Shown here: positions 1 through 64,000 of the stretch, piece after piece
Layout: every line of letters begins with the position of its first letter
How positions within the stretch are numbered: the stretch's first letter is position 1
Assembly (NCBI GenBank): GCA_002189035.1
Contig: CM007992.1
Location: forward strand, 1,984,001-2,048,000
DNA: 64,000 bases
Source: Utricularia gibba
Taxonomy: Eukaryota > Plantae > Magnoliophyta
Reading direction: 5' to 3'
Notes under the pieces: generated by a model
The model's input: only the letters and a program-made list of their open reading frames with translations
Told to the model about the DNA's origin: nothing
Database searches by the model: none
Translations under genes and position numbers: made by a program

Positions 1-2255
1 TCCAGGGAAGAGAAATCACATGCATCCTTTACCTACTTTGAAGATGAGCCAGAAATATCTTTTGAAAATCCTTTTGAGTATGAGTGTGCTCTAATGACAG
101 TAGCCTCAGATGCTAAAGATTGGTACTTGGACTCTGGTGCCTCCTATCATGTATGTTGTGATACAAGGTCATTTCTCAAGCTTGAAAGGATTGGGAAGGA
201 GGTAAGCACGTGCACTGGTGAAAATATTGGCACTGTGGGCAAAGGAAGCATTTTACTCTTGCTAAAAGAAGGAATTGTTCAAGTTGATGATGTTTATTAT
301 TCACCAAACCTCAAACAGAACCTGTTGAGCTTTGGCCAATTGAGCAGGCAAGGTTTTGACATTGAGCTGATGAAGGATGCTGGTGGTATAACCACTAAAG
401 TTAAGGTTGCTGATCCAAAAACGAAGATTGAATTCCATGCTGTGTTGACCACCTACAACCTCTACCAAATCATGGTCAGTGATCATAAAAGTTGTATTTT
501 CTCACTTCAGGATCAAAGCAGCCTTTGGCACAAACGTTTTGGGCACTATAGCTTCAACAATTTGAAAATATTGCAGAAGAATAAGGAAGTACTGGAATTG
601 AAAGACATCAAGTTTGCTAATGCCATATGTGAAGTGTGCCATCAAGGTAAGCAATGTAGAAAGCCGTTTTATTCCAGTGATTCAGTAGCAAAGGAGAAAT
701 TAGAGCTTGTGCATACAGATGTTTGTGGACCATTTAAGGAATGTTCATTAGGGGGAGTAGATATTTTGTTACATTCATTGATGATTATTCACGTTATTGT
801 TGGGTTTACTTTCTTAAAAGCAAGTCAGAAGTTCATCATATCTTTCGAAAATTCAAAGTGATGATTGAGAATCAGAGTGGATGCTCTTTGAAGATGATTA
901 GATCAGACAATGGAGGCGAATTCTACAATAATAGCATGAGAATGTTCTGTGAAAATGAGGGAATCATGCATCAATTCACCGTACCATATTCTCCACAACA
1001 GAATGGTGTATGTGAAAGGAGAAACAGAACAATCCTTGATATGTCAAGATGTCTATTGTTTGAGAAAGATCTTCCTGTAAATTTCTGGGCTGAAGCGGTA
1101 TCTACATCTGTATATCTATTGAACTTGCTTCCCTCAAGGGCGATTAGTGGAAAAACCGCGCATGAAAAATGGCATGGTTATATTAAAAAGGTTGATCATT
1201 TCAGAATCTTTGGTAGTCTGTGTTTTACTCATGTACCAGACCAAAAACGAGGAAAACTTGATAAGAAATCTGCATCTGGTGTATTTGTTGGTTATAGCAA
1301 CACTACCAAGGGATATAAAGTTTATTTACCTCAACAGAAGAAATTTATTTTCAGCCATGATGTCACTTTTGATGAAGGTGCAAGGTATACTTTAATTGAT
1401 GATTGCATTTCTCTGAATGATGTAGAAGCTCATAAAAGTGATGGAAGGCATAGCACCCATGGGAAAGGAGACCTCTGGACACACATGTCTCAAAACTTCT
1501 CTTAAATAAGTGCCCTGTAGTCTGGTTTTCGAAGAAACAAAAAGTGGTAGCACAATCAACAGCTGAAGCAGAATACATCTCAGCAGCACATGCTTCGAAC
1601 TATTGTGTTTGGTTCAGGCAGATGCTAAACGAACTTGGATTCATACAACAGGAAGCTACACATCTGCTTATGGATAATCGAGCTGCAATCTCCATTGCCA
1701 AGGATCCGACGAACTTCAGCAAAGCCAAACACATAAGAATCAGGTATCATGTCATAAGTAATTACATCAAGGAGAAGAAGATTAAAGTGCAATATGTTGA
1801 GAGTGGGAATCAGCTTGCTGATGGGCTCACCAAAGGTTTGAACAGAGTTCACTTTGAGCTAGCAAGGAAGAACATGAATCTCATGATTATGGAAGACTTT
1901 CTCAAATTGGGAGATCTCGGTCTGGGAAGGAATGTTGGAGATCAGCCTCAATCCAAACCTTGAAGGTGATTGGAAGAACTAAACATGTGTCATAATGTCA
2001 TATTTCAGATAAAAAAGGTATTGGGTTCGAGCATGGAATTGTTGGATTTGAGTTGTTGGGCTTTTTGTGTGTTTTCAATGATTGTGGCCCACTGTTGGGT
2101 AACCTAGGTATTGGGTATATATAAACCCTACTAGGAATGCGTGTCATTAAGTTTTCGGTCATTATTATTGTTCATGAGTCGTTTTTCATCCAAGGTGATC
2201 TCATAAGCATTACCTTTTTGTTACTTCCCAAGACTCTATTTTTCTTGCAACAACA
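1..2255 (+). mobile_element. Ty1/copia element, 3' part (5' end outside window): protease-integrase, internal deletion of RT, RNase H, PPT, 3' LTR (subtype A)
   Basis: ORFs 94-861, 741-1505 and 1544-1963 match the intact copy (WYLDSGAS protease, HTDVCGP/IRSDNGGEF integrase, QSTAEAEY RNase H). There is a -1 G at 751-755 and a ~1.57-kb deletion at 1502/1503. The LTR is 1933-2255. Confidence 0.93.
1933..2255 (+). repeat. copia LTR subtype A (323 bp), 3' LTR
   Basis: TGTTGGAGATC...GCAACAACA, preceded by a purine tract and followed by GCAAG. Confidence 0.95.
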
Positions 2256-3695
2256 GCAAGTTCCTCATATCTTCCGAAAATTCAAAGTGATAACTGAGAA
2301 TCAAAGTGGATGCTCCTTAAAGATGATTCGATCAGACAATAGAGGTGAATTCTAAAATAATAGCATGAGAATGTGCTGTGAAAATGTGGGAATCATGCAT
2401 CAATTCACCGTTCCATATTCTCCACAACAGAATGATATATGTGAAAGGAGAAACACAACAATCCTTTATATGTCAAGATGCCTATTGTTTGAGAAAGGTC
2501 TTCTTGTAAATTTTTGGGCTGAAGCGTTATCTACATCTATATATCTATTGAACATGCTTCCATCCAGGGCGATCATGAAAAATGTCATGGTTATATTAAA
2601 AAGGTTGATCATCTCAGAATCTTTGGTAGTCTATGTTTTACTCATATACCAGACAAAAATCAAGGGAAACTTGATATGAAATCTGTATCTGGTGTATTTG
2701 TTGATTATAGCAACACTACCAAGGGATATAAAGTTTATATACGTGACCAGAAGAAATTTATCTTCAGCCATGATGTCTCTTTTGATGAAGGTGCAAGGTA
2801 TACTTGAATTGATAATTGCATTTCTCTGAATGATGCAGAAGCTCTTAAAATCTATTATTGATTTCGGATTGTTCTATCCTTATGAAGGTGAAAAACCAGT
2901 CTTGAAACTTCGAGCCTACTCAGATAGTGATTATGGTATGACTGAAGATAACAAGAGTACATCTGGTGCACTCTTCTTCTTAAATAAGAGTCCTGTAATC
3001 TGGTTTTTGAAGAAACAAAAGGTGGTAGCACAATCAACAGCTGAAGCAGAATACATCTCAGCAACACATGCTTCGAACTATTGTGTTTGGTTGAGCCAGA
3101 TGCTAAACGAACTTGGATTCATACAAAAGGAAGCTACACATCTGCCTATGGATAATCGAGTTGCAATCTCCATTGCCAAGGATCCGACGAACTTCAGCAA
3201 AGCCAAGCAAATAAGAATCAGGTATCATGTCATAAGGAATTACATCAAGGAAAAGAAGATTAAAGTGCAGTATGTTGAGAGTGGGAATCAGCTTGCTGAT
3301 GGGCTCACCAAAGGTTTGAATAGAGTTCAGTTTGAGTTAGCAAGGAAGAACATGAATCTCATGAGTATGGAAGATTTTCTCAAGTTGGGAGATCTCTGTC
3401 TGGGCGGAGTGTTGGAGATCAGCCTCAATCCGAAGGTTGAAGGTGATTGGAAGCATTAATCTTGTGTCATAATGTCATGTTTCAGATAAAAAAGGTGTTG
3501 GATCGAGCATGGAACTGTTGGGTTCGAGTTGCTGGACTTTTTGTTTGTTTTCAATGATTGTGGCCCACTGTTGGTTAACTTCAGTATTGGGTATATATAA
3601 ACCCTACTAGGAATGCGTGTCAACTAGGTTTTCGGTCATTCTTATTGTTCATGAGTCGTTTTTCATCCGGAAACTTTATCTTTCTTGCATCAACA
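2256..3695 (+). mobile_element. degenerate copia (subfamily D): integrase fragment, RT deleted, RNase H, 3' LTR 3410-3695
   Basis: ORFs 2365-2679 and 2830-3459. The integrase end is joined directly to the RNase H start at ~2835. The LTR carries an internal deletion. Confidence 0.9.
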
Positions 3696-4083
3696 GTTTG
3701 GTGTTCGAAAATCGATTAAGAGTCCTTCAAATCCTCTTGTTTCAGCTTTAATTGCTCCTATTAAGAAATAGGTGCCTTGTTAGTCGTTTTCCAAACACGG
3801 TTTCCCCCATTGATGTATATGAAATACTCAATATTCTTTATCTATCTGCAATGTGAACATCTGTTAGAAAATGTTGAGGGGTTGTGGACCCACACTCTTA
3901 GTAACATGGTTTTAATTATGGGATTCATGGCTAATTATGTCAGATATATCTGCGGCATCTTTGAAAGTAAGCCAAACACAAAAGATGAGGGAAACATGTT
4001 TATACATCATTTGGTGCGGGTTTGTAGGTGGTGGTTGGAAAATATCTCTTATGATCACTACAGATGAACTTGGACAATACATG
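3696..4083 (+). pseudogene. possible highly degraded Ty3/gypsy integrase remnant (second copy 15708-16095)
   Basis: ORF 3777-4067 loosely resembles the gypsy integrase HHCC region (…MANYVRYIC…KPNT…WLENISYD). The similarity is weak and judged by eye only. Confidence 0.3.
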
Positions 4084-4861
4084 TGATGTGACTCTCTAAT
4101 CTAAAGAGTTCAGAAACCCACGAATAATAGGTAATTTTGAAGCTTAGAAAGGAACCCATCCAAGTCTACCATCAAAAGAATGAATTAGGAGACAAACTTC
4201 AGAAGGAGAATGAATTGGAATTAATAGTCTTAGGAAACCACAAGCTCAAAGTTTGATAAATCAAGAGCAAATACGTAAATGAAATAAACTAAAGGTCCTC
4301 AAGGAGTAAATCTCTAGAGTTCTTCTACTCTATAAGTGGTATCTAACATTTCTGAGCCCAAACTACATAAAAAGGAACACCTAACAAGTGCTAAGCACAC
4401 ATCAAAGTCGAGAACATGTTTTGAGCTCTAAGATAGATTCAGGCTAAAGTAGTTGGACTCATTTAATGGTAAGTGTTCAAGCTCAAGTTTGCTTTCAATA
4501 GTGTTGAGTAGACTGTTGAGTGTATCTTCAGTCATCTTGCTCTTACTCCATGTCATTAGTTCTAGTGAAATGATCTTACGCTCCAAATTGCTCACTTCTG
4601 CAACATTCTAATCAATGCTTAAATACTCTTCATCATCTTCTTAGGGCTCATCATCTCCCCCTTCTTTAGGTAGATTCGTCCCTGAATCTATTTCGAAAAG
4701 GGACAAATTAGCAACATTGAAAGTTGAATGAACAGAATACTCACGTGGCAAAAGTATCTTGTATGCATTATTATTCAGGTGCTCAACAACTAGAAAAGAG
4801 CCATGTCCACGAGGAAGAAGTTTTGACTTTATCTTGGTGGAATACCTCTCCTTCCTAAGAT
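4084..4861 (-). mobile_element. CRM-type chromovirus 3' end: integrase C-terminus, PPT and 3' LTR (4084-4653)
   Basis: LRKERYSTKIKSKLLPRGHGSF…NNAYK…FNV is a CRM integrase tail. On the minus strand AAAGAAGGGGGAGA precedes TGATGAGCCC, and the LTR termini are TGATG/CATCA. Confidence 0.85.
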
Positions 4862-7800
4862 TGTTGGAGATCAGCCTCAATCCAAAGCTTGAAGGTGATT
4901 GGAAGAACTAAACTTGTGTCATAATGTCATATTTCAGATAAAAAAAGGTGTTGGGTTCGAGCATGAAAGTGTTGGATTCGAGTTGTTAGGCTTTTTGTGT
5001 GTTTTCAATGATTGTAGCCCACTGTTGGGTAACCTAGATATTGGGTATAATGTTAGACAATGAAACCATACAAGTCTATTATGAACGTACTGCGAAGCTT
5101 GTGAAGGAGATTTGAGGATTGGGGGAAAAACTTGAGAATCAAAAGGTGATTAGCAAGGCAATCATGAGCCTACCTGCAAGATTCGAGCCAAAGTTATGTG
5201 CACTTGAGACAGAAAGAAAAATCCTTGACATTATTGAAGGAAAGCTCCATCAGCTGTATCCTGAATATCCTGTTTCACCAGGACCAACATTTAGAGAGTT
5301 CATGATTCAGTTGCAATCTATAGAAAAGAGATTGAAACTAAGAGATGGTTATGAAGTTGATAAAACTTATGGTGAAGCTGCTCTCCTCACCAAAATGCAG
5401 AATATGAATATAACCTCAGGTGCAATTAACAATGTCAAGGATGTCAAGACAACAGCCATCAAACAATCACCAACGTCAATCCAAACATCAACGATGGGCA
5501 ATCAGAAGTGCAGGCATTGTGACAAATCCAACCATAAGAGTGAAGATTGTGGGACTTTAAGCACAAATGGTTTTGACATTGAGCTGATGAAGGATGTTGG
5601 TGGTATAACCACTAAAGTTAAGGTTGCTGATCCAAAAACGAAGATTGAATTCCATGCTGTGTTGACCACCTACAACCTCTACCAAATCATGGTCAGTGAT
5701 TATAAAAGTTGTATTTTCTCATTTCAGGATCAAAGCAGCCTTTGGCACAAACGTTTTGGGACTATAGCTTCAACAATTTGAAAATATTGCAGAAGAATAA
5801 CGAAGTACTGGAATTGAAAGACATCAAGTTGGTAATGCCATATGTGAAGTGTGCCATCAAGGTAAACAATGTAGAAAGCCCTTTTATTCTAGTGATTCAG
5901 TAGCAAAGGAGAAATTAGAGCTTGTGCATACAGATGTTTGTGGACCATTTAAGGAATGTTCATTAGGGGGGAGTAGATATTTTGTTACATTCATTGATAA
6001 TTATTCACGTTATTGTTGGGTTTACTTTCTTAAAAGCAAGTCAGAAGTTCATCATATCTTTCGAAAATTCAAAGTGATGATTGAGAATCAGAGTGGATGC
6101 TCTTTGAAGATGATTAGATCAGACAATGGAGGTGAATTCTAAAATAATAGCATGAGAATGTTCTGTGAAAATGAGGGAATCATGCATCAATTCACCGTAC
6201 CATATTCTCCACAACATGTTGGTGTAAGTGAAAAGAGAAACAGAACAATCCTTGATATGTCAAGATGTATATTGTTTGAGAAAGATCTTCCTGTAAATTT
6301 CTGCGCTGAAGCGGTATCTACATCTGTATATCTATTGAACTTGCTTCCCTCAAGGGCGATTAGTGGAAAAACCGCGCATGAAAAATGGCATGGTTATATT
6401 AAAAAGGTTGATCATCTCAGAATCTTTGGTAGTCTGTGTTTTACTCATGTACCAGACCAAAAACGAGGAAAACTTGATAAGAAATCTGCATCTGGTGTAT
6501 TTGTTGGTTATAGCAACACTACCAAGGGATATAAAGTTTATTTACCTCAACAGAAGAAATTTATTTTCAGCCATGATGTCACTTTTGATGAAGGTGCAAG
6601 GTATATTTTCATTGATGATTGTATTTCTCTGAATGATGCATAAGCTCATCAAAGTGATGGAAGGCATAGCACCCATGGGAAAGGAGACCTCTGGACACGC
6701 ATGCCTCAAAACTTCTCTTCCAGGAATTCAACAAACCAAGAAACTTCAGAACTCGTTCATGAAGATTCAAATCAAGTAAATGATCAGCATTCAGATGAGA
6801 ATTTTCCAGCTCCAGAGGAGGAGAAGGCCAATGATCTACATTTAGATGGGAATTTCGAAATCCCAGAAGAGGAGCAAGGCACGAATGCAGAAGACTCATC
6901 AACAGATGAATCTGATGGAGAGGAACCTGATACTGATGATGAAGATTATTACCCATCTGATCGTGATTGGCAAAGGAGGAAACGCAAAAACATCAGAGAT
7001 TCAATAGATAATGAAGATAGTCATGTTACTGACATTAGACGAAGCAAAAGAAACAAGGCTCCTACAATAAGTTTCTCCAAGTTGAATGATGATGTCCAAG
7101 ATGCTGTAGCTGATATTTTGGCTGGATTATTGACAGGAGATCCAACATCATTTGAAGTGGCTGTACAAAATCCGAAATGGAGAGAGGCCATGAAGGAAGA
7201 AATGAACTCTATACTTGAAAATGAAACATGGGAGTTAGTTGATAAACCCAAGGATAGAGGTTTCAAACCTATTGGCCTCAAGTGGTTATTCAAAACCAAG
7301 ATGAATGCAGATGGTTCTATCAACAAATATAAGGCTAGATTAGTAGCCAAGGGATATAGTCAGATCAAAGGAATAAATTTTCATGAGGTTTTTGCACCAG
7401 TAGCAAGATTTGACACGATTAAAGTACTTCTTGCCATTTCAGCTGCTCATGGATGGAAAGTGCATCACATGGATGTTAAGACTGCGTTCTTGAATGGTGT
7501 GTTGGAGGAGGTTGTTTTTGTTGAACAACCAAAGGGCTTCGAAGTGTCAGGTCATGAAGACAAGGTATTGAAGCTAAAGAAATCTCTCTATGGGTTGAAG
7601 CAAGCTCCTAGAGCATGGAATGAACGCATGGATAACTTTCTTCAGGGTATTGGTTTCAGAAAAACATATAGTGATTACTCACTATATGTTAAAGGAAAAG
7701 AAGATGATCGTTTATTTATTAGCTTATATGTGGATGATCTTATGATTACCTCAGGTAATGAAAGGAAGATTGAGGAATTCAAAGGTCTGCTCAAAAATGA

Positions 7801-8789
7801 ATTCAAAATGACTGACCTTGGAATGATGTCTTACTATCTAGGCATGGAAATTCATCAGCTTGAAGGTGTTGGAACATTCATATCTCAGAAAAAGTACTGT
7901 AATGAACTTCTTGAAAGGTTTGGGTTCAAAGATGTCAATCCTTCAAAAACGCCTTTGGATTACAAACAAGTGATTGGAGAGAACAATCAGGGAAAGAATG
8001 TGGATGCCACTACTTATAGAAGTATGATTGGAAGCCTCATTTATCTCCAGCATACAAGGCCTGACTTGTGTTTTTGTGTAAACGTCTTATCTCGCTTCCT
8101 CAACAAACCAACAACAACTCACATGGCAGCTGTGAAAAGAGCTTTCAGGTACATAAAATCATCTACTGATTTCGGATTGTTCTATCCCTATGAAGGTGAA
8201 AAACCAGTCTTGAAACTTAGAGCCTACTCAGATAGTGATTATGGTATGGCTGAAGATAGCAAGAGTACATCTGGTGCACTCTTCTTCTTAAATAAGTGCC
8301 CTGTAGTCTGGTTTTCGAAGAAACAAAAAGTGGTAGCACAATCAACAGCTGAAGCAGAATACATCTCAGCAGCACATGCTTCGAACTATTGTGTTTGGTT
8401 CAGGCAGATGCTAAACGAACTTGGATTCATACAACAGGAAGCTACACATCTGCTTATGGATAATCGAGCTGCAATCTCCATTGCCAAGGATCCGACGAAC
8501 TTCAGCAAAGCCAAACACATAAGAATCAGGTATCATGTCATAAGGAATTACATCAAGGAGAAGAAGATTAAAGTGCAATATGTTGAGAGTGGGAATCAGC
8601 TTGCTGATGGGCTCACCAAAGGTTTGAACAGAGTTCACTTTGAGCTAGCAAGGAAGAACATGAATCTCATGACTATGGAAGACTTTCTCAAATTGGGAGA
8701 TCTCGGTCTGGGGGGGAATGTTGGAGATCAGCCTCAATCCAAACCTTGAAGGTGATTGGAAGAACTAAACATGTGTCATAATGTCATAT
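4862..8789 (+). mobile_element. recombinant copia: truncated 5' LTR subtype C (4862-5049), deleted gag/protease, integrase fragments, intact RT-RNase H, truncated 3' LTR subtype A (8719-8789)
   Basis: The LTR start follows AAGAT. Deletions occur at ~5049 and ~5570. The RT-RH ORF is 6701-8749. The two LTRs belong to different subtypes. Confidence 0.88.
6701..8749 (+). CDS. pol: copia pol C-terminal half: integrase tail, reverse transcriptase, RNase H (no upstream gag in frame)
   Basis: [40 protein letters not shown] and STAEAEY motifs. Confidence 0.85.
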   Translation: MPQNFSSRNSTNQETSELVHEDSNQVNDQHSDENFPAPEEEKANDLHLDGNFEIPEEEQGTNAEDSSTDESDGEEPDTDDEDYYPSDRDWQRRKRKNIRDSIDNEDSHVTDIRRSKRNKAPTISFSKLNDDVQDAVADILAGLLTGDPTSFEVAVQNPKWREAMKEEMNSILENETWELVDKPKDRGFKPIGLKWLFKTKMNADGSINKYKARLVAKGYSQIKGINFHEVFAPVARFDTIKVLLAISAAHGWKVHHMDVKTAFLNGVLEEVVFVEQPKGFEVSGHEDKVLKLKKSLYGLKQAPRAWNERMDNFLQGIGFRKTYSDYSLYVKGKEDDRLFISLYVDDLMITSGNERKIEEFKGLLKNEFKMTDLGMMSYYLGMEIHQLEGVGTFISQKKYCNELLERFGFKDVNPSKTPLDYKQVIGENNQGKNVDATTYRSMIGSLIYLQHTRPDLCFCVNVLSRFLNKPTTTHMAAVKRAFRYIKSSTDFGLFYPYEGEKPVLKLRAYSDSDYGMAEDSKSTSGALFFLNKCPVVWFSKKQKVVAQSTAEAEYISAAHASNYCVWFRQMLNELGFIQQEATHLLMDNRAAISIAKDPTNFSKAKHIRIRYHVIRNYIKEKKIKVQYVESGNQLADGLTKGLNRVHFELARKNMNLMTMEDFLKLGDLGLGGNVGDQPQSKP

Positions 8790-8841
8790 GTTTAGTTCTT
8801 CCAATCACCTTCAAGGTTTGGATTGAGGCTGATCTCCAACA
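8719..8841. repeat. perfect 54-bp inverted repeat of the LTR 5' terminus with a 15-bp spacer
   Basis: 8719-8772 is the exact reverse complement of 8788-8841. Confidence 0.95.
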
Positions 8842-9179
8842 TACTGCTCTGATACCATGTTGATGCAAGAAAAAGAGAGTCTTGGGAAGTAACAAAAAGG
8901 TAATGCTTCTGAGATCACTTTGAATGAAAAACGACTCATGAACAATAAGAATGACCAAAACCCTAATTGACACGCATTCCTAGTAGGGTTTATATATACC
9001 CAATACCTAGGTTACCCAACAGTGGGCCACAATTATTGAAAACACACAAAAAGCCCAACAACTCGAATTCAACACTTCCATGCTCGAACTCAACACCTTT
9101 TATCTGAAATATAACATTATGACACAAGATTAGTGCTTCCAATCACCTTCAAACTTTGGATTGAGGCTGATCTCCAACA
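8842..9179 (-). mobile_element. copia 5' LTR subtype B (8858-9179) with PBS (8846-8857); internal region interrupted 4 nt after the PBS
   Basis: Reverse complement of TGGTATCAGAGC adjacent to a full 322-bp LTR. Confidence 0.92.
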
Positions 9180-12100
9180 GCAAGGACTCATGCTCTCACG
9201 CACAAATCCTTTAGACACCAATTCCTCAACTTGTTTTTGTATTTCCTTCGTCTACTCTGGATTGGCTCGGTATGCTAGTCGGTTTGGGAGTTGTGCTCCA
9301 GGGACAAGGTCAATTTGATGCTCAATCCCTCTAAGGGGAGGTAAGCCTTGAAGTTCTTCTGGAAAAACATCTTCATATACCTGTAAGAGAGACACAACAC
9401 AAGATGGAATGGATGAAGCATGGTTAGGTGAAGTAGGAACTTCATCCTTATACATGAGTAGAATGAATGGTTGCCTAGCATGAAGTAAGTGTCTAATCTC
9501 ACTTGGCCTTGCTAATAGACTTTCATTCTTTCTCTCAATTCCTAAAACTCTAATGTTTTCACTCTCTGTTTTGTGCTCATTTTCATCCTTTTTTCCACTC
9601 AATTCCTTGCCATCTCTTCTTTTTTCTCCACTTTTTCGCATCTTTTTTTCACTCATTTTCACTCCACTCATATCTTCTCCCTTAGGAACGACCACCTTGT
9701 GCTTTCCATTATCAGTATGAAGGGCTCTAGCATCACTCAGAATTCTGACTTGATCTTCATGTGCCTCCTTTGGAGATAATGGAGCAAGTGTGATGGAGCG
9801 TCCATTATAATTGAAGGAATATTTGTTCTTGAAACCATCATGAAATGCTCTTCTATCATATTCCCAAGGTCTCCCATGAAGAATATGGCTTGCATGCATA
9901 GGAACAACATCACATAGGACTTTATCTTCATATCTCCCTATGGAAAACGTCACAAGCACTTGTTTGGTAACCTTTACCTCACTTCCTTCATTGAACCACT
10001 GCAGATTGTAAGGCTTAGGATGCCTCACGGTTGGTAGTCCCAATTTCTCCACCAAGATGTTGCTGGCAACATTGGTGCAACTACCTCCATCAATAATCAG
10101 GCTGCAAACTTTCCCATTAACAAAGCATCGGGTTTGAAACAAGTTCTCCCTTTGCTCATCATTATCCTTCACTCCAATGTTAAGCGTCCTTCGAGTGACT
10201 AATACTTCTCCAGAAACAGGCAATTCATCCTCATCACTCACTTCAGCTTCTGTCTCCACTAGATCATCATCATCTTCACTAACAACTTCGCCATTGCCCC
10301 TAATCACCATTGCTCGTTTATTTGGGCATTCAGAAGCAATATGTCCAAGCCCCAAGCATTTGAAACATTTTATGTTTCTGGTAGTTCCCTTTGGAGGTGT
10401 TGTTCGCTCCCCTTTCTTGGAACTTGATGGGATGTCGAATTTGAAGTTTTCCATGGATGACTTCCCTTTATTTCTCCCCATCATCTCATTGGTGCCCCCA
10501 AATTTCGAACCAGAAGTCCTCTTGTTGAAATCTCTTGCGAAACTCTTGCTAGATAGTTGTTTCTCAACCTTTGTGGCCATATGAATCATGTCCTCCATCT
10601 CAATGTAGTGATGAAGCTCCACAATATTTGCAATCTCCTTATTCATCCCATGAAGAAACCTAGCCATAGTTGCTTCTCTATCTTCATGAACATGAGCTCT
10701 AATCATTAAAATCTCCATTTCCTGCCAATATTCCTCCACTGGCCTTGATGTTGTTAACATCCTTTCCAATTCTTCCTCCGTCTCTTCTACCTCCCTGATC
10801 TCGAAATCTTCTTGTATCCCCATGCACAAAATCATTTTCACTATGTTCAATGTAGTTATCTTCTTCATCAGTATTCAGGGTTCGATCTCTTCTTCCAACA
10901 GTCCTTGCACTTCATTGATCACTTAAGTCATGTTCAGTGTTGATGCGTTGATGCAATTGACTACCTCGACCCCTTCCAGCAGCATAATTATCTTGTCTTC
11001 GTGCTCTTGCAACATTTTGCAAAGAATTTTCGTGTTCATCAAGCCTGACATTTATGTTTTCCAGAATGCAATGCAATCTAGTGAACTCCTGTTGCATAGC
11101 TTTCAAAGTGAACCTCTCATCCGGTGAGTAATCCTTTTCATGCTCACTTCTGGAATTTGACATCCTAAATACAGGATTTACCACTCAATCCTCAAGCTTC
11201 AAGTCCTTGATGCACTCTTTAATGTCATCATGCTTGTTCTCATGGCATCTAACGAATTAATCACTTCCAGATTGGTATTGATTATAGTGTAATGATGGAG
11301 TTAGGTGAGGGTGGCAGTATTAATAGTCTCAAGATGGAGACAAAGGGAAGTGTTTAAATTAAATTGGTTGCTTGTTGGAATAGATAAATAGGAAGGATGG
11401 ACAACAAGGTAAGAACAGATGAAATCAGAGAATAGAGCACTACACACGAAATGTGTTGCTTGCTAAACTATAGAAATACAGGAATGGGCAATCAACAAAG
11501 AGAATAGTCAAATGGAAAGGTGGGGACACGTGAATGACAGGGGATGGGAATTGAAGATAAGAAAAACAACAATAAAGTGGTTGCTTGGTGGAATGGGAAA
11601 AGTAGAGAGGTGGGCCACAATTTAAATATATATAATAATGGATGATAGTGATGGGTAATGGATATTCACCTTCACACTCCTTATCCTCTTACACACTTGA
11701 AAATGATATTCAATGTGTTCTTGCTATTCAAATTGACACTCAATTTCGAGCTCTTCTTCAATCAACTTCCTGTGAACCCCCCCTTTTTTTTTGTGCTAAA
11801 GCGAAAAGTAATAATGACTTGGCTTGAACGTTTTTTTTTTTTTTTTTTTTTTTGAATAGGCAGGAATAGAAGAACTCAAACAAGAACTGGATAATAATAA
11901 GGATAAGGAACCCAAAGCTCTGATACCAAATGATGTGACCCTCTAATCTAAATAGATTAGCAACCCACGAACAAGAGATGATTTTGAAGCTTAGAAAGTA
12001 TCCCACCGAAGTCTACCCTCAAGAGAATGAATCTCTTGTAACCAGACTTCGAAACAAAGAAAATTAGGACCCACACTTCAGAAAAGAGAAGGGATTGGAA

Positions 12101-54146: not shown

Positions 54147-55152
54147 GTCACGAATCAAGATAACTCATCCAATGAGAATTCAGAATCAAACTCAAAACCC
54201 CTATATAAACAATCTCATCAGGCCAATGATCAACATTCAGATGGGAATTTGGAAATCCTAGAAGAGGAGCAAGACACGAATGCAGAAGACTTATCAACAG
54301 ATGAATCTGATGGAGAGGAACCTGATACTGATGATGAAGATTATTACCCATCTGATCGTGATTGGCAAGGAAGGAAACACAAAAACATCAGAGATTCAAT
54401 GATTAATGAAGATAGTCATGTTACTGACATTAGAAGAAGCAAAAGAAACAAGGCTCCTACAATAAGTTTCTCCAAGTTCAATGATGATGTCCAGGATGCT
54501 GTAGCTGATATTTTGGCTGGATTATTGACAGGAGATCCAACATCATTTGAAGTGGCTGTACAAAATTCGAAATGGAGAGAGGACATGAAGGAAGAAATGA
54601 ATTGTATACTTGAAAATGAAACATGAGAGTTAGTTGAGAAACCCAAGGATAGGGGTTTCAAACCTATTGGCCTCAAGTAGTTATTCAAAACCAAGATGAA
54701 TGCAGATGGTTCTATCAACAAATATAAGGCTAGATTAGTAGCCAAGGGATATAGTCAGATCAAAGGAATAAATTTTCATAAGATTTTTGCACCAGTAGCA
54801 AGATTTGACACGATTAAAGTACTTCTTGCCATTTCAGGTGCTCATGGATGGAAAGTGCATCACATGGATGTGAAGACTGCGTTTTTGAATGGTGTGTTGG
54901 AGGAGGTTGTTTTTGTTGAACAACCAAAGGGTTTTGAAGTGTCAGGTTATGAAGACAAAGTATTGAAGCTAAAGAAATCTCTTTATGGGTTGAAGCAAGC
55001 TCCTAGAGCATGGAATGAACACATAGATTGTTGGAGATCAGCCTCAATCCAAACCTTGAAGGTGATTGGAAGAACTAAACATGTGTCATAATGTCATATT
55101 TCAGATAAAAAAGGTATTGGGTTCGAGGATGGAATTGTTGGATTTGAGTTGT

Positions 55153-55226
55153 TGGGCTTTTTGTGTGTTTTCAATGATTGTGGCCCACTGTTGGGTAACC
55201 TAGGTATTGGGTATATATAAACCCTA
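55153..55226 (+). promoter_or_regulatory. LTR promoter: two site-II-like motifs (TGGGCT 55153-55158, GGCCCA 55182-55187), TATA box (55212-55221), telo-box AAACCCTA (55219-55226)
   Basis: The motifs are read directly from the sequence and are present in most LTR copies. Function is inferred. Confidence 0.6.
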
Positions 55227-55469
55227 CTAGGAATGCGTGTCATTAGGTTTTCGGTCATTATTATTGTTCATGAGTCGTTTTTCATCCAAGGTGATCTCAT
55301 AAGCATTACCTTTTTGTTACTTCCCAAGACTCTATTTTTCTTGCAACAACATGGTATCGGAGCAGTAAGGTTCTCAAACCTGTGTTCGTTTCAGTATTTT
55401 ATATACCGTTCAGCGTTTTTTACCTGGTGGACTACCAAGTATCAACCCAAAGCTTGTCAAGCGGTGGCT

Positions 55470-58400
55470 ATGATGGCATCTGGTAGAGGACCTCCAATAT
55501 TTGATGGTTCAGAGTATGGAAGCTGGGTCAAAAAGATGCGCAGCTACCTTCGGGTCAGAAAGATTTGGGATGTTGTTGAAAGGGAGATTCCGGCTATTAC
55601 AATAACAAGCAAATCCACATCAGAACAGCAAGAGGAAGCTGAGTATCTTCAACAGAGAAAAGATGAAGCAATGGATGCCTTGTATCAAGCCATCTCTGAA
55701 CATCTATTTGATGATATTGCAGAGTGTCAATCAGCAAAAGAAATATGGGATACTCTCAAATCCCATTATGAAGGCGATGCCAAACTCAGAGAGATATTAT
55801 GCAAAAACAAGCTGGAGGACTTTGAGAGGAACAAAATGTTAGACAATGAAACCATACAAGTCTATTATGAACGTACTGCGAAGCTTGTGAAGGAGATTCG
55901 AGGATTGGGGGAAAAACTTGAGGATCAAAAGGTGATTAGCAAGGCAATCATGAGCCTACCTGCAAGATTCGAGCCAAAGTTATGTGCACTTGAGACAGAA
56001 AGAAAAATCTTTGACATTATTGAAGGAAAGCTCCATCAGCTGTATCCTGAATATCCTGTTACACCAGAGCCAACATTTAGAGAGTTCATGATTGAGTTGC
56101 AATCTACAGAAAAGAGATTGGAGCTAAGAGATGGTTATGAAGTTGAGAAAACTTATGGTGAAGCTGCTCTCCTCACCAAAATGCAGAATATGAATATAAA
56201 CTCAGGTGCAATTAACAATGTCAAGGATGTCAAATCAACAGCCATCAAACAATCACCAACGTCAATCCCCACATCAACGATGGGCAATCAGAAGTGCAGG
56301 CATTGTGACAAATCCAACCATAAGAGTGAAGATTGTTGGACTTTAAGCACAAATGCTTGCAAGCATTGTAACAAACAGAATCACAGGAGTGAGTTTTGTT
56401 GGTGGAAGCCTGATGCTTTGTGCACGAAATGCAATCAAAGAGGCCATCTTGACAAGGTATGTGGAATGTCAAAACCAATAAAAGTTGAGCATAACAAGAA
56501 GGCTACTTCCAGGGAAGAGAAATCACATGCATCCTTTACCTACTTTGAAGATGAGCCAGAAATATCTTTTGAAAATCCTTTTGAGTATGAGTGTGCTCTA
56601 ATGACAGTAGCCTCAGATGCTAAAGGTTGGTACTTGGACTCTGGTGCCTCCTATCATGTATGTTGTGATACAAGGTCATTTCTCAAGCTTGAAAGGATTG
56701 GGAAGGAGGTAAGCACGTGCACTGGTGAAAATATTGGCATTGTGGGCAAAGGAAGCATTTTACTCTTGCTAAAAGAAGGAATTGTTCAAGTTGATGATGT
56801 TTATTATTCACCAAACCTCAAACAGAACCTGTTGAGCTTTGGCCAATTGAGCAGGCAAGGTTTTGACATTGAGCTGATGAAGGATGCTGGTGGTATAACC
56901 ACTAAAGTTAAGGTTGCTGATCCAAAAACGAAGATTGAATTCCATGCTGTGTTGACCACCTACAACCTCTACCAAATCATGGTCAGTGATCATAAAAGTT
57001 GTATTTTCTCACTTCAGGATCAAAGCAGCCTTTGGCACAAACGTTTTGGGCACTATAGCTTCAACAATTTGAAAATATTGCAGAAGAATAAGGAAGTACT
57101 GGAATTGAAAGACATCAAGTTTGCTAATGCCATATGTGAAGTGTGCCATCAAGGTAAGCAATGTAGAAAGCCGTTTTATTCCAGTGATTCAGTAGCAAAG
57201 GAGAAATTAGAGCTTGTGCATACAGATGTTTGTGGACCATTTAAGGAATGTTCATTAGGGGGGAGTAGATATTTTGTTACATTCATTGATGATTATTCAC
57301 GTTATTGTTGGGTTTACTTTCTTAAAAGCAAGTCAGAAGTTCATCATATCTTTCGAAAATTCAAAGTGATGATTGAGAATCAGAGTGGATGCTCTTTGAA
57401 GATGATTAGATCAGACAATGGAGGCGAATTCTACAATAATAGCATGAGAATGTTCTGTGAAAATGAGGGAATCATGCATCAATTCACCGTACCATATTCT
57501 CCACAACAGAATGGTGTATGTGAAAGGAGAAACAGAACAATCCTTGATATGTCAAGATGTCTATTGTTTGAGAAAGATCTTCCTGTAAATTTCTGGGCTG
57601 AAGCGGTATCTACATCTGTATATCTATTGAACTTGCTTCCCTCAAGGGCGATTAGTGGAAAAACCGCGCATGAAAAATGGCATGGTTATATTAAAAAGGT
57701 TGATCATCTCAGAATCTTTGGTAGTCTGTGTTTTACTCATGTACCAGACCAAAAACGAGGAAAACTTGATAAGAAATCTGCATCTGGTGTATTTGTTGGT
57801 TATAGCAACACTACCAAGGGATATAAAGTTTATTTACCTCAACAGAAGAAATTTATTTTCAGCCATGATGTCACTTTTGATGAAGGTGCAAGGTATACTT
57901 TAATTGATGATTGCATTTCTCTGAATGATGTAGAAGCTCATAAAAGTGATGGAAGGCATAGCACCCATGTGAAAGGAGACCTCTGGACACACATGTCTCA
58001 AAACTTCTCTTCCAGGAATTCAACAAACCAAGAAACTTCAGAACTCGTTCATGAAGATTCAAATCAAGTAAATGATCAGCATTCAGATGAGAATTTTCCA
58101 GCTCCAGAGGAGGAGAAGGCCAATGATCTACATTCAGATGGGAATTTCGAAATCCCAGAAGAGGAGCAAGGCACGAATGCAGAAGACTCATCAACAGATG
58201 AATCTGATGGAGAGGAACCTGATACTGATGATGAAGATTATTACCCATCTGATCGTGATTGGCAAAGGAGGAAACGCAAAAACATCAGAGATTCAATAGA
58301 TAATGAAGATAGTCATGTTACTGACATTAGACGAAGCAAAAGAAACAAGGCTCCTACAATAAGTTTCTCCAAGTTGAATGATGATGTCCAAGATGCTGTA

Positions 58401-60059
58401 GCTGATATTTTGGCTGGATTATTGACAGGAGATCCAACATCATTTGAAGTGGCTGTACAAAATCCGAAATGGAGAGAGGCCATGAAGGAAGAAATGAACT
58501 CTATACTTGAAAATGAAACATGGGAGTTAGTTGATAAACCCAAGGATAGAGGTTTCAAACCTATTGGCCTCAAGTGGTTATTCAAAACCAAGATGAATGC
58601 AGATGGTTCTATCAACAAATATAAGGCTAGATTAGTAGCCAAGGGATATAGTCAGATCAAAGGAATAAATTTTCATGAGGTTTTTGCACCAGTAGCAAGA
58701 TTTGACACGATTAAAGTACTTCTTGCCATTTCAGCTGCTCATGGATGGAAAGTGCATCACATGGATGTTAAGACTGCGTTCTTGAATGGTGTGTTGGAGG
58801 AGGTTGTTTTTGTTGAACAACCAAAGGGCTTCGAAGTGTCAGGTCATGAAGACAAGGTATTGAAGCTAAAGAAATCTCTCTATGGGTTGAAGCAAGCTCC
58901 TAGAGCATGGAATGAACGCATGGATAACTTTCTTCAGGGTATTGGTTTCAGAAAAACATATAGTGATTACTCACTATATGTTAAAGGAAAAGAAGATGAT
59001 CGTTTATTTATTAGCTTATATGTGGATGATCTTATGATTACCTCAGGTAATGAAAGGAAGATTGAGGAATTCAAAGCTCTGCTCAAAAATGAATTCAAAA
59101 TGACTGACCTTGGAATGATGTCTTACTATCTAGGCATGGAAATTCATCAGCTTGAAGGTGTTGGAACATTCATATCTCAGAAAAAGTACTGTAATGAACT
59201 TCTTGAAAGGTTTGGGTTCAAAGATGTCAATCCTTCAAAAACGCCTTTGGATTACAAACAAGTGATTGGAGAGAACAATCAGGGAAAGAATGTGGATGCC
59301 ACTACTTATAGAAGTATGATTGGAAGCCTCATTTATCTCCAGCATACAAGGCCTGACTTGTGTTTTTGTGTAAACGTCTTATCTCGCTTCCTCAACAAAC
59401 CAACAACAACTCACATGGCAGCTGTGAAAAGAGCTTTCAGGTACATAAAATCATCTACTGATTTCGGATTGTTCTATCCCTATGAAGGTAAAAAACCAGT
59501 CTTGAAACTTAGAGCCTACTCAGATAGTGATTATGGTATGGCTGAAGATAGCAAGAGTACATCTGGTGCACTCTTCTTCTTAAATAAGTGCCCTGTAGTC
59601 TGGTTTTCTAAGAAACAAAAAGTGGTAGCACAATCAACAGCTGAAGCAGAATACATCTCAGCAGCACATGCTTCGAACTATTGTGTTTGGTTCAGGCAGA
59701 TGCTAAACGAACTTGGATTCATACAACAGGAAGCTACACATCTGCTTATGGATAATCGAGCTGCAATCTCCATTGCCAAGGATCCGACGAACTTCAGCAA
59801 AGCCAAACACATAAGAATCAGGTATCATGTCATAAGGAATTACATCAAGGAGAAGAAGATTAAAGTGCAATATGTTGAGAGTGGGAATCAGCTTGCTGAT
59901 GGGCTCACCAAAGGTTTGAACAGAGTTCACTTTGAGCTAGCAAGGAAGAACATGAATCTCATGACTATGGAAGACTTTCTCAAATTGGGAGATCTCGGTC
60001 TGGGGGGAATGTTGGAGATCAGCCTCAATCCAAACCTTGAAGGTGATTGGAAGAACTAA
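55470..60059 (+). CDS. gag-pol: copia Gag-Pol polyprotein (gag, 3 CCHC knuckles, protease, integrase, RT, RNase H)
   Basis: Single open frame. The ORF track starts it at 55233 inside the LTR; the probable start is MMASGRGPPIFDGSEYGSW. All catalytic motifs are present (DSGAS, DVCG/SDNGGEF/VCER, YVDD, DSD/EAE/DN/ADGLTK). Confidence 0.93.
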   Translation: MMASGRGPPIFDGSEYGSWVKKMRSYLRVRKIWDVVEREIPAITITSKSTSEQQEEAEYLQQRKDEAMDALYQAISEHLFDDIAECQSAKEIWDTLKSHYEGDAKLREILCKNKLEDFERNKMLDNETIQVYYERTAKLVKEIRGLGEKLEDQKVISKAIMSLPARFEPKLCALETERKIFDIIEGKLHQLYPEYPVTPEPTFREFMIELQSTEKRLELRDGYEVEKTYGEAALLTKMQNMNINSGAINNVKDVKSTAIKQSPTSIPTSTMGNQKCRHCDKSNHKSEDCWTLSTNACKHCNKQNHRSEFCWWKPDALCTKCNQRGHLDKVCGMSKPIKVEHNKKATSREEKSHASFTYFEDEPEISFENPFEYECALMTVASDAKGWYLDSGASYHVCCDTRSFLKLERIGKEVSTCTGENIGIVGKGSILLLLKEGIVQVDDVYYSPNLKQNLLSFGQLSRQGFDIELMKDAGGITTKVKVADPKTKIEFHAVLTTYNLYQIMVSDHKSCIFSLQDQSSLWHKRFGHYSFNNLKILQKNKEVLELKDIKFANAICEVCHQGKQCRKPFYSSDSVAKEKLELVHTDVCGPFKECSLGGSRYFVTFIDDYSRYCWVYFLKSKSEVHHIFRKFKVMIENQSGCSLKMIRSDNGGEFYNNSMRMFCENEGIMHQFTVPYSPQQNGVCERRNRTILDMSRCLLFEKDLPVNFWAEAVSTSVYLLNLLPSRAISGKTAHEKWHGYIKKVDHLRIFGSLCFTHVPDQKRGKLDKKSASGVFVGYSNTTKGYKVYLPQQKKFIFSHDVTFDEGARYTLIDDCISLNDVEAHKSDGRHSTHVKGDLWTHMSQNFSSRNSTNQETSELVHEDSNQVNDQHSDENFPAPEEEKANDLHSDGNFEIPEEEQGTNAEDSSTDESDGEEPDTDDEDYYPSDRDWQRRKRKNIRDSIDNEDSHVTDIRRSKRNKAPTISFSKLNDDVQDAVADILAGLLTGDPTSFEVAVQNPKWREAMKEEMNSILENETWELVDKPKDRGFKPIGLKWLFKTKMNADGSINKYKARLVAKGYSQIKGINFHEVFAPVARFDTIKVLLAISAAHGWKVHHMDVKTAFLNGVLEEVVFVEQPKGFEVSGHEDKVLKLKKSLYGLKQAPRAWNERMDNFLQGIGFRKTYSDYSLYVKGKEDDRLFISLYVDDLMITSGNERKIEEFKALLKNEFKMTDLGMMSYYLGMEIHQLEGVGTFISQKKYCNELLERFGFKDVNPSKTPLDYKQVIGENNQGKNVDATTYRSMIGSLIYLQHTRPDLCFCVNVLSRFLNKPTTTHMAAVKRAFRYIKSSTDFGLFYPYEGKKPVLKLRAYSDSDYGMAEDSKSTSGALFFLNKCPVVWFSKKQKVVAQSTAEAEYISAAHASNYCVWFRQMLNELGFIQQEATHLLMDNRAAISIAKDPTNFSKAKHIRIRYHVIRNYIKEKKIKVQYVESGNQLADGLTKGLNRVHFELARKNMNLMTMEDFLKLGDLGLGGMLEISLNPNLEGDWKN

Positions 60060-62559
60060 ACATGTGTCATAATGTCATATTTCAGATAAAAAAGGTATTG
60101 GGTTCGAGCATGGAATTGTTGGATTTGAGTTGTTGGGCTTTTTGTGTGTTTTCAATGATTGTGGCCCACTGTTGGGTAACCTAGGTATTGGGTATATATA
60201 AACCCTACTAGGAATGCGTGTCATTAGGTTTTCGGTCATTATTATTGTTCATGAGTCGTTTTTCATCCAAGGTGATCTCATAAGCATTACCTTTTTGTTA
60301 CTTCCCAAGACTCTATTTTTCTTGCAACAACATAGATAACTTTCTCCAGGGTATTGGTTTCAGAAAAACATATAATGATTACTCACTGTACGTTAAAGGA
60401 AAGAGAGATGATCGTTTATTTGTTAGCCTATATGTGGATGATCTAATGATTACTTCAGGTGATGAAAGGAAGATTGAAGAATTCAAAGCCCTTCTCAAAA
60501 ATGAATTCAAGATGACTGACCTTGGAATGATGTCCTACTATCTAGGCATGGAAATTCATCAACTGGCAGGTGTTGGAACATTCATATCTCAGAAGAATTA
60601 CTGTAATGAACTTCTTGAAATGTTTGGGTTCAAAGATGTCAATCCTTTAAAAACCCCTTTGGATTACAAACAGGTGATTCTATAGAATAATCAGGGAAGT
60701 AATGTGGATGCTACTACTTACAGAAGTATGATTGGAAGCCTCATTTATCTCCAGCATACAAGGCCTGACTTGTGTTTTTGTGTAAATGTTTTATCTCGCT
60801 TCCTCAACAAATCAACAACAACTCACATGGCAGTTGTGAAAAGAGCTTTTAGGTACATAAAATCTACTATTGATTTCGGATTGTTCTATCCCTATGAAGG
60901 TGAAAAACCAGTGTTGAAACTTAGAGCCTACTCAGATAGTGATTATGGTATGGCTGAAGATAGCAAGAGTACATCTGGTGCACTCTTCTTCTTAAATAAG
61001 AGTCCTATAGTCTGGTTTTCGAAGAAACAAAAGGTGGTAGCACAATCAACAGCTGAAGCAGAATACATCTCAGCAGCACATGCTTCGAACTATTGTGTTT
61101 GGTTGAGGCAGATGTTAAACGAACTTGGATTCTTACAAAAGGAAGCTACGCATCTGCTTATGGATAATCGAGCTGCAGTATTCATTGCCAAGGATCCAAC
61201 GAACTTCAGCAAAGCAAAGCGCATAAGAATCAGGTATCATGTCATTAGGAATTACATCAAGGAGAAGAAGATTAAAGTACAGTATGTTGAGAGTGGGAAT
61301 CAGCTTGCTGATGGGCTCACCAAGGGTTTGAACTGAGTTCAGTTTGAGTTAGCAAGGAAGAACATGAATCTCATGACTATGGAAGACTTTCTCAAGTTGG
61401 AAGATCTCGGTCCGGGGGGGGTGTTGGATAAAAAAAGGTGTTGGATTCGAGCATGGAAGTGTTGGGTTCGAGTTGCTGGCTGGGCTTTTGTGTGTTTTCA
61501 ATGATTGTGGCCCACTGTTGGGTAACCTAAGTATTGGGTATATATAAACCCTACTAGGAATGCGTGTCAACTAGGTTTTCGGTCATTCTTATTGTTCATA
61601 AGTCGTTTTTTCATCCAAGGTGATCTCATAAGCATTACTTTTTTGTTAATTCCCAATACTATCTTTCTTACATCAACAAAAAGAAGGTGTTCTTTTTTCT
61701 CTATGATAAACGAAAAATTATGCAATGTCGTTAATTTTGTAAATTTTTCTATCAAATAAAATTTGTAAACCTAATTCACATCAAATTATATGAAAAATAT
61801 GAGCATAGTGGACTAGGGTCGAATGCATGGAGCATGGTGCTTGTGATATGAAAGTCAATGCATGAAATCAGTGTCATATTGGTAAATTTGGTTTTAACTA
61901 GAACTAAGACAAACTTGCAATAAAATACAGTAAGGAAAAGTAACAAACTTCTGAACTCGGTTGATTTTAAGATGAAATGGGTAATGCCTTGGGCTCCTAG
62001 GGGATGTATGCTCATTACTAAATAGGCTCATACAAACCATAAATCAAACACTTAACACACTAAAATCTAGGTCTACTCGGACTCTTGTTTTTCCCCTAAT
62101 CTTTGGTCTACCTCTAATTAAGGTTGTTAAGATGGGGTTTCACTACTTCCTCCTCCTGAATCTATCCTGGTTTGTTAAGGCAGTGGCGTGATTTATGGTT
62201 GATAAAGTCTAAAGAATTATTAGCATATTTCTCCCCTATTCACCCAAGGCACCCTTTAAGTGTTTAGTCACTCATGCTTAAGGTAAATGAAAATAGAAAA
62301 GGAAGCATCATCTACATTGTATTCATCTCACGGTCGACTACCAAAAAGTAAACAATTATGTTCTTTTGATTCATGGAGACATTCAATTAGATTATCAGCA
62401 GAAACAATGAAGACATTCATTATGGTGATTCATGGAGACATTCAAACCTCCTACAATAGGCGGAAACAATTATGTTCTTTTGATTATTTATGATTTCAAC
62501 AGAAAAATGTGGATTTATCTCGAGAGGAATAAATCAGAAGTCTATGAAATCTTCAAAGG

Positions 62560-63240
62560 GCTTTTGGTCATAGTCGATAAAACAAATTAGATTATCACAA
62601 GGCACTTGAGATACAATAGTCATTCTTAATATGGTGAGATGTCTCCTAAATAAAATTAAATGCCTTGGGAATTTTGGAGTAATGCTACTGCTACATCAAG
62701 TGCATATTTTGAATCGCATCCTCTCATGAAATGCAGTGGCCAGTGGCACTGAAGGAGGCATGGAATGGAATTAAACCGTCAGCACATATGAGAGTTTTTT
62801 GATTGATTTCTTACATACATAGGCCCAATGATGAATGAATGTAAGTAGAAGATAAAGCGCGAAAATTGATGTGTAAAGTGGGAAGCTATGATCAAACCTC
62901 AAGACTCATCGCTTGTTTGTCAGTGGTTTCGCTTGTCATGCAATTTGGTTAAGGCATGCTCTTCATAATCTTGATGTGGAAAGTGCGAAGCCAAGAGTGA
63001 TTCATATTGATAATAAATCTACAATTACTCTTGCTCAAAATCTATAATTCTCTATGCTCATAGTAAGTATATTGGGACTCTTTTCCATTTCATTCTAGAT
63101 TGAATGAAAGATGGGAAGATTGACTTATGTTAAGAGTGAAGATCATATAGTAGATATTTTCACTAAGTCTTTGAAGATTGAGACTTTTTTTCGTTTAAGG
63201 AATTCAATTAGAGTTAGTAAACTTCTTGTTTTAGGGAGGC
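62560..63240 (+). pseudogene. heavily degraded remnant of an unrelated copia element (integrase end, RNase H end, PPT-like tract)
   Basis: WNGIKP…HMRVF, DNKSTI.LA, YVKSEDHIVDIFTKSL…FRLRNSI, followed by TTAGGGAGGC. Confidence 0.65.
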
Positions 63241-63648
63241 TATTGAAGATACAGAAGAAAGCTGCAATTGACTGGTCTAGAAGTTTAATAGTTAGATAAG
63301 AATTAGTATGGTTGAATAATACATCAATTTGAAATACTTGAAGTAGTTTGATTGTTTGAGATAAGGATTGCCTCTTATATATTATAAATAACTCTCTTCC
63401 AATCAGCGTATATGAATATAGAAAATACTTCCAAAAAGTGTGTATTTCTCCATTTAAATTTTGTTTTTTAAGATCGTAGCAGGGTGTCTTTTCCTCTATT
63501 TTAAATCCTCTTCCAATACTTCAACCTTCAGATTTTTACACATATATGACCATGTTGATGTCAAAGATAATTATTGTTTTCCCATCAACCAGGATCATTT
63601 AATCAAAAGGTTGTATACAATACATCACATGCCATGGTCTCTTGGAAG

Positions 63649-64000
63649 TGTTGGAGATCAGCCTCAATCCAAAGTTTGAAGGTGATTGGAAGCACTAATC
63701 TTGTGTCATAATGTTATATTTCAGATAAAAGGTGTTGAGTTCGAGCATGGAAGTGTTGAATTCGAGTTGTTGGGCTTTTTGTGTGTTTTCAATAATTGTG
63801 GCCCACTGTTGGGTAACCTAGGTATTGGGTATATATAAACCCTACTAGGAATGCGTGTCAATTAGGGTTTTGGTCATTCTTATTGTTCATGAGTCGTTTT
63901 TCATTCAAAGTGATCTCAGAAGCATTACCTTTTTGTTACTTCCCAAGACTCTCTTTTTCTTGCATCAACATGGTATCAGAGCAGTAAGGTTCTCAAACCT
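63649..64000 (+). mobile_element. start of another young copia: 5' LTR-B 63649-63970, PBS 63971-63982
   Basis: The LTR matches 30410-30731 by eye. TGGTATCAGAGC follows. The left flank GGAAG predicts the TSD. Confidence 0.95.

Follow-up and report, generated by a model that had tools for sequence, protein, structure and literature searches.

Among the closest described counterparts of the locus reported here is Tal1/ALE4 of Arabidopsis lyrata (Tsukahara et al. 2025, PMC11735389), a Ty1/copia retrotransposon of about 5 kb with short long terminal repeats (LTRs), whose very young copies are concentrated in gene-free DNA where Ty3 elements also accumulate. [quoted passage not shown] Tal1 inserts into CENH3-bound satellite arrays, as shown by the mapping of new insertions, whereas the window lacks satellite and is known from its sequence alone. 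The U. gibba family also differs in that its best reverse transcriptase (RT)-RNase H matches are only 46-51% identical and in that its gag has three CCHC knuckles. The integrase C-terminus determines whether Tal1 and EVD target centromeres or arms (PMC11735389), and the long, variable C-terminal tail of the U. gibba integrase could carry a targeting determinant as in Tal1/ALE4.

Nested blocks of the same satellite-free kind, with one or two dominant families and the youngest copies inside, are known from the centromeres of einkorn wheat (Cereba/Quinta), Physcomitrium (Bryco copia) and apple (Hodor/Copia-7) (PMC10984392). The evidence there comes from CENH3 mapping or from a single cluster on each chromosome, whereas the present case is one 64-kb window. 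Three Ty3 pieces of the window resemble CRM elements of group A (PMC3059260; Coffea CRC, PMC5818461), sharing among them TGATG..CATCA ends, LTRs of about 600 bp, a primer-binding site (PBS) matching tRNA-Met, a poly(A) run in the 5' untranslated region (UTR), gag and protease fused in one frame, and an integrase frame passing into the 3' LTR, but a complete element is absent from the window. Putative centromeres of U. gibba itself have been described as rich in transposable elements (TEs), gene-poor, highly methylated, coincident with the methylation peaks and free of satellites (Lan et al. 2017, as cited in PMC8333044 and PMC10663240). These two accounts differ from what we find in that they report a paucity of centromeric chromoviruses and name no dominant copia family. 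In our interpretation, the window is probably a nest of LTR retrotransposons within heterochromatin close to a centromere, where copia integration is regionally biased.

The composition of the window was measured by blastn of one copia copy, E7 (55029-60332, 5304 bp, flanked by a target-site duplication, TSD), against the 64,000-bp window. The family of E7 covers 47,211 of the 64,000 bp (73.8%) and gives 23 LTR matches, which confirms the figures of about 47 kb and about 23 LTRs in the initial annotation. Five of these matches are products of two segmental duplications, leaving 18 independent ones, several of them fragmentary. Some 16.8 kb lies outside the E7-matching family and includes about 13.8 kb of Ty3 pieces (about 21.6% of the window), about 2 kb of degenerate copia from a different family, and two copies of an otherwise unclassified 415-bp stretch. 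In total, copia makes up about 77% and Ty3 about 22% of the window. The same annotation had called the remainder mostly CRM-type, with at least two LTR subfamilies. Three LTR-bearing pieces in two subfamilies bear this out in part, but the remainder is more accurately described as mostly Ty3, about one-third of it with group-A CRM hallmarks. Likewise, the copia family is the main builder of the array as far as its 73.8% coverage goes, but about 10 kb of its 47 kb (22%) is owed to the two segmental duplications and not to transposition.

The absence of genes and satellite, also claimed initially, was upheld. No host genes were found in the 64-kb window, Rfam and ARAGORN returned zero RNA families and zero tRNAs from it, and Tandem Repeats Finder (TRF), run at score 50 and at score 30, detected no tandem array within it. 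The TRF output consists only of a 51-bp x2 repeat in the copia open reading frame (ORF), 21-23-bp x2 repeats and homopolymers. In the U. gibba genome as a whole, all Copia elements amount to 4.36% (Angela 1.33%, Ivana 1.16%, Ale 0.57%) and CRM to 0.83% (PMC6982007 Table S6). Against these published averages, copia is enriched about 18-fold in the window and CRM/Ty3 10- to 26-fold. The window is thus a block of nested LTR retrotransposons with neither satellite nor genes, an organization that is required for a retrotransposon-based, satellite-free centromere yet is insufficient by itself to identify one.

The copies of copia DNA in the window are as follows (A and B denote LTR subfamilies; internal positions are those of the reference copy):

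1-2255, plus strand: E1, 5' end beyond the window, deletion of reference 2984-4544, 3' LTR at 1933-2255; lies inside O1, right flank GCAAG
2254-3668, plus strand: right part of O1, an old copy with an internal deletion and a partial LTR at 3410-3668, identity to the reference about 90-93%; second copy at 14266-15680
4859-8789, plus strand: E9, a deleted derivative with LTR positions 1-187 followed by reference 807-1327 and 1831-5052
8771-9179, minus strand: inverted LTR fragment and complete 5' LTR (8858-9179) with PBS; this LTR is of subfamily B and shows 100% identity to those of E4
12536-13939, plus strand: left part of O1, reference 936-2306
13945-14267, plus strand: solo LTR, TSD GCAAG, sharing its target site with E1
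19071-24434, plus strand: E2, full length, LTRs 93.8% identical and of different subfamilies, no TSD (CAAGG versus AAGAT)
29371-39978, minus strand: E3 (29371-30409 plus 35712-39978), LTRs 322/323 identical, flanks TGGTT versus AAAGC, split by E4
30410-35711, plus strand: E4, subfamily B, LTRs 322/322 identical, TSD GCATC, antisense within E3
41677-46781, minus strand: E5, a crossover chimera with truncated 3' LTR
48480-50492, minus strand: E6, old, reference 3103-5105, about 93% identical to the reference
50501-61678, plus strand: O2, old, LTRs 91.7% identical, no TSD, two nested insertions
55029-60332, plus strand: E7, subfamily A, LTRs 322/323 identical, TSD TAGAT, within O2
61679-63643, no strand assigned: remnant of a second copia family, degenerate and heavily internally deleted, with readable integrase and RNase H motifs
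63649-64000, plus strand: 5' LTR and PBS of E8, subfamily B, LTR 100% identical to E4; continues past the window

These copies record a long series of insertions. With E7 as yardstick, the LTRs fall into tiers: old ones in O1, O2 and E6 (90-93% identical), intermediate ones in the 5' LTR of E9 and the 3' LTR of E2 (95-97%), subfamily A with E1, E3, E5, E7 and the solo LTR (98.8-99.7%), and subfamily B, in which the LTRs of four separate loci (E4, E8, 8858-9179 and the 5' LTR of E2) are 99.7-100% identical among themselves. The two LTRs of one element tell the same story, with pairs about 92-94% identical in old copies and identities of 322/323 in E7 and E3 and 322/322 in E4. Divergence is about 9% in the oldest copia copies, whereas the LTRs of the youngest are identical. 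A single mismatch in 323 bp gives K = 0.003, which at commonly used plant rates of 0.7-1.3 x 10^-8 substitutions per site per year equals about 0.1-0.2 million years.

Copia elements have inserted both into their own family (E1 in O1, E4 in E3, E7 in O2) and into Ty3 relics, at junctions 9179/9180, 24434/24435 and 39978/39979; the copy at 8771-9179 interrupts the CRM-type element on its right. Invasion in the reverse direction is recorded by a CRM solo LTR with its own TSD, GTGAC, within the copia copy O2. Therefore, both families invaded each other. The youngest copia insertion, at 63649, struck the second-family remnant at 61679-63643. At 8719-8857, a truncated 3' LTR (its first 71 bp) stands head-to-head with the same 71 bp in inverted orientation, with a 19-bp overlap, forming a small palindromic junction beside the complete inverted LTR.

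We estimate that the window holds at least 12 independent copia insertions, some of them blurred by rearrangements. By a rough calculation, about 4.4 Mb of Copia placed at random in a genome of about 100 Mb would put roughly 0.5 insertions, counted over all copia families, into 64 kb, versus the at least 12 seen here from one family. The clustering of copia in the window is far beyond chance. This count bears on whether the elements arrived here preferentially or were only retained here. Under passive accumulation, copia would insert at random, survive only in the recombination-poor heterochromatin of a compact genome and be multiplied by local duplication. Old, intermediate and young copies do occur together, as in a safe haven; gene space makes up about 51% of the genome, and over one-fifth of the copia DNA of the window stems from segmental duplication, as calculated above. 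We nevertheless regard this account as rather doubtful. Besides the excess over random placement, the four insertions of subfamily B and the nearly or fully identical LTR pairs are too young for selection or deletion to have removed their counterparts elsewhere, unless a recent burst was very large. Four independent insertions with such LTRs therefore favor a regional integration bias over slow loss elsewhere.

Recombination among the copies has added to the block. Two duplications were identified:

35712-50492, minus strand: tandem duplication of 6,804 bp, about 2.2 units, each unit consisting of copia plus a 1.7-kb Ty3 spacer
13945-19070, plus strand: second copy of another duplication, the first being 1933-7058; of the 27 differences over 5126 bp, 18 lie in the last 1.2 kb

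Mismatches between the 6,804-bp units number 36 in 35712-36250 and 26 in 43212-43683, with about 8 in the roughly 7 kb between. Up to a switch near reference 3570-3730, E5 equals E3 (its 5' side); beyond it, E5 equals the old copy E6 (its 3' side). Because mismatches between the tandem units sit only at the outer ends, E5 can be recognized as part E3 and part E6. This pattern marks the 6.8-kb duplication as the product of a very recent unequal crossover, inside the RT region, between two copia copies 1.7 kb apart. The junctions of truncated copia 3' LTR with Ty3 RT (41671-41818 and 48474-48625) contain a 21-bp x2 repeat, and a poly-C run differs in length between the duplication units (15 versus 19). 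In the second duplication, one unit retains E1 in full, and in the other, recombination between the LTRs of the duplicated E1 has left the solo LTR with TSD GCAAG. Matching TSDs are missing from E2, E3 and O2, and the LTRs of E2 come from different subfamilies; these three are recombinant elements. Together, the TSD-less chimeras and the solo LTR show frequent ectopic recombination. We also considered the 3' half of E2 as a duplicate of the 3' half of E9 and rejected it, as the two are 96.5% identical with mismatches evenly spread.

The nesting of E4 in E3 has created an inverted repeat whose two arms, each about 4.27 kb, share 98.7% identity (30410-34678 versus 35712-39978). Judging from this arrangement, read-through from either LTR could produce a long hairpin RNA.

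Many near-identical copies and two near-identical large duplications are hard for assemblers, and collapsed or mis-joined long-read contigs of a dispersed family could mimic such an array. We consider this explanation highly improbable. Nested copies show matching TSDs and complementary reference coordinates on either side of the insertions, distinct events set the duplicate units apart (solo LTR in one, full element in the other; E4 in one unit only), and mismatches are structured around a single crossover zone. The copia family is also contained in an independent DNA run from 2019, though as short contigs only.

The Ty3 relics of the window derive from at least five elements, three of which have group-A CRM hallmarks. 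The pieces are:

4084-4858, minus strand: CRM-type 3' end with integrase C-terminus (SH3_Tf2-1), polypurine tract and 570-bp 3' LTR (4084-4653) with TGATG..CATCA ends and a decayed LTR ORF; duplicated at about 16096-16870
9180-12535, minus strand: CRM-type 5' part with 605-bp 5' LTR (11931-12535) and TGATG..CATCA ends
53542-54146, minus strand: CRM-type solo LTR of 605 bp with TSD GTGAC, within O2, intact 74-codon ORF at 53924-54145
24435-29370, minus strand: Ty3 fragment with pol domains, no LTR and no integrase C-terminus
39979-41676, repeated at 46782-48479, minus strand: Ty3 fragment Sp with RT, RNase H and integrase zinc finger, no LTR and no integrase C-terminus

CRM elements are characterized by LTRs with TGATG/YATCA termini, a PBS for tRNA-Met, a leader rich in A and a polyprotein reaching into the 3' LTR, in which the CR motif is encoded, the last two features being typical of group A (Neumann et al. 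2011, PMC3059260). Elements of this group concentrate at plant centromeres (PMC3059260). Coffea CRM elements have the same features, with LTRs of 661-781 bp (PMC5818461). In the window, TGATG ... T/CATCA ends of this kind delimit the LTRs at 11931-12535, 53542-54146 and 4084-4653. The first two belong to the same subfamily and are about 91% identical; the 570-bp LTR represents a second CRM-type subfamily, about 75% identical to the first. The 9180-12535 piece has both the tRNA-Met PBS (TGGTATCAGAGC at 11917-11928, 2 nt past the 5' LTR) and the A-rich 5' UTR, with a 23-nt poly(A) at 11831-11853, followed by a gag-zinc knuckle-protease ORF of 538 codons (9252-10868) in which the protease signal is weak. 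At the other end of an element, the integrase frame crosses the polypurine tract into the 3' LTR at 4653/4654.

In that frame, a 74-codon ORF is intact in two CRM-type LTRs, the solo LTR and the LTR at 11931-12535, which opens with it (12313-12534). Its product contains ...IPPGPMTRSKTK.... A HMMER search of this LTR-encoded peptide against 1.84 billion proteins gave only 4 matches, one of which shares the core P-GP-x-TRS-[KR]-x-K, and one of which repeats the motif VPEGPVTRSR[AT]KRFKESLNGFI. By its sequence the peptide is compatible with a CR motif, 4 matches being too few for proof. Two database proteins, P0135 and P0132, have 3 and 31 repeated matches to the peptide motif, respectively; they are probably gene calls over tandemly repeated CRM-LTR-derived DNA of another species. 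A literature search on the letters of the motif gave no relevant match. The two intact LTR ORFs differ by 6 synonymous and 8 non-synonymous codon differences, and a selection signal is not clear. The LTR-bearing CRM-type pieces carry no RT. The Ty3 fragments at 24435-29370 and 39979-41676 cannot be called CRM because they lack an LTR and an integrase C-terminus and because their RTs are only 44-56% identical to each other at the protein level.

Repeated insertion of elements with group-A CRM hallmarks argues for centromere-proximal chromatin, and the initial annotation had gone further in proposing a candidate retrotransposon-built centromere. The gene-free and satellite-free nest, the group-A CRM hallmarks and the clustered young copia copies all agree with that proposal, but the same features fit flanking heterochromatin. 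In its strongest form, the proposal would make the window the core, bound by CENH3, of a centromere built from retrotransposons and free of satellite, with a copia family that, like Tal1, integrates specifically into CENH3 chromatin. Beyond the features just named, retrotransposon-only centromeres exist in einkorn wheat, moss and apple (PMC10984392), a centrophilic copia is known (PMC11735389), and the putative centromeres of U. gibba are reported as satellite-free (PMC8333044). On the other side, TEs make up about 32% of the genome, and TE islands thus far exceed the likely size of centromere cores. The nearest copia protein matches are about 50% identical, which makes any kinship with Tal1/ALE conjectural, and Coffea CRM elements with a CR motif are not all centromere-specific (PMC5818461). 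A literature search found no CENH3 data for Utricularia. The evidence from the window fits a CENH3 core and flanking heterochromatin alike, and we hold the core to be possible, at a likelihood clearly below even. A more elaborate version, in which a CENH3-bound, satellite-free core would be combined with copia targeting that evolved independently of ALE4/Tal1 and with recombination making kb-scale tandem repeats as an early step from transposon centromere to satellite, seems unlikely from the sequence features available.

Placement in centromere-proximal heterochromatin, which we favor, has to be weighed against three points. First, U. gibba centromeric regions are said to have few centromeric chromoviruses (PMC8333044, citing Lan et al. 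2017). This statement fits poorly with CRM-type pieces; either it is incomplete or the window is not such a region. Second, where a genome is very gene-dense, TE islands collect the surviving insertions through selection alone. Third, in Coffea, elements with a CR motif are not always strictly centromeric.

The history of the nest reads as follows. Ty3 relics and earlier copia copies were repeatedly invaded by the 5.3-kb copia family. We propose that this family inserts preferentially into such chromatin and does not merely survive there. Judged by the example of Tal1 and Ty5, the C-terminal tail of its integrase probably anchors the integration complex on a chromatin factor. Homologous recombination among the copies has since remodelled the block and made it larger, through the 6.8-kb tandem duplication, the second duplication of at least 5 kb, the solo LTR and the TSD-less chimeras.

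The dominant family has the terminal and coding organization of Ty1/copia. Its LTRs measure 323 bp and have TG..CA ends (starting with TGTTGG and ending with AACA). The PBS is TGGTATCGGAGC or TGGTATCAGAGC, and TSDs are TAGAT, GCATC and GCAAG. In E7, TGGTATCGGAGC, which matches initiator tRNA-Met, directly follows the 5' LTR, the 3' LTR comes after a polypurine tract, and the TSD is TAGAT. The E7 polyprotein is encoded in a single uninterrupted frame of 1608 codons (gag, protease, integrase, RT and RNase H), in which Pfam domains follow the Ty1/copia order Retrotran_gag_2, Pol_BBD, gag_pre-integrs, rve, SH3_retrovirus and RVT_2. The frame (55233-60059) is open from within the 5' LTR, upstream of a TATA-like box, through the PBS and into the 3' LTR; the likely true start of the polyprotein is the methionine of MMASG... 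at about 55470. In gag (55470-56700) the three CCHC zinc knuckles are consecutive; one CCHC knuckle is usual in plant copia gag.

Between integrase and RT lies a long acidic stretch followed by a basic stretch. The acidic tail carries a 51-bp tandem duplication, found in the window at these positions:

6779-6880, 18791-18892, 33450-33551, 36839-36940, 43643-43743 and 58071-58172: 51-bp x2 repeats

An insertion/deletion of 69-75 bp in the acidic tail (22161-22229 and 54147-54219) distinguishes the older copies E2 and O2, where the sequence is present, from the youngest copies, where it is absent. A database search with the whole polyprotein gave a best match of 34% identity and no close relative of similar length, and exact look-up of the 1608-residue product found no identical protein on record. 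The RT-RNase H search, by comparison, gave thousands of matches, which stop at about 51% identity and include no lineage-labelled protein; the nearest carry generic names only. Three runs that were guessed to be RNA were compared with one copia copy; one 236-bp low-depth contig, from one of the three, was obtained in all, and contigs yield neither copy number nor expression level.

Retrotransposon-only centromeres, centrophilic copia elements (Tal1/ALE4 and Brassica ALE) and a TE-rich, satellite-free putative centromere in U. gibba are already known. As it stands, the window is a well-documented yet ordinary heterochromatic retrotransposon nest. Should CENH3 occupy this locus, U. gibba would be one of the few plants whose centromeres consist of transposons only, and its genome of roughly 100 Mb would be convenient for their study. 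Next to Tal1/ALE4, the copia family would then represent a second copia lineage, probably an independent one, whose integration is directed to centromeres. The step from transposon to tandem repeat has been called poorly understood in reviews (PMC10984392), and the fresh 6.8-kb tandem unit of copia plus Ty3 relic illustrates how recombination between transposons that are probably centromere-proximal makes tandem repeats.

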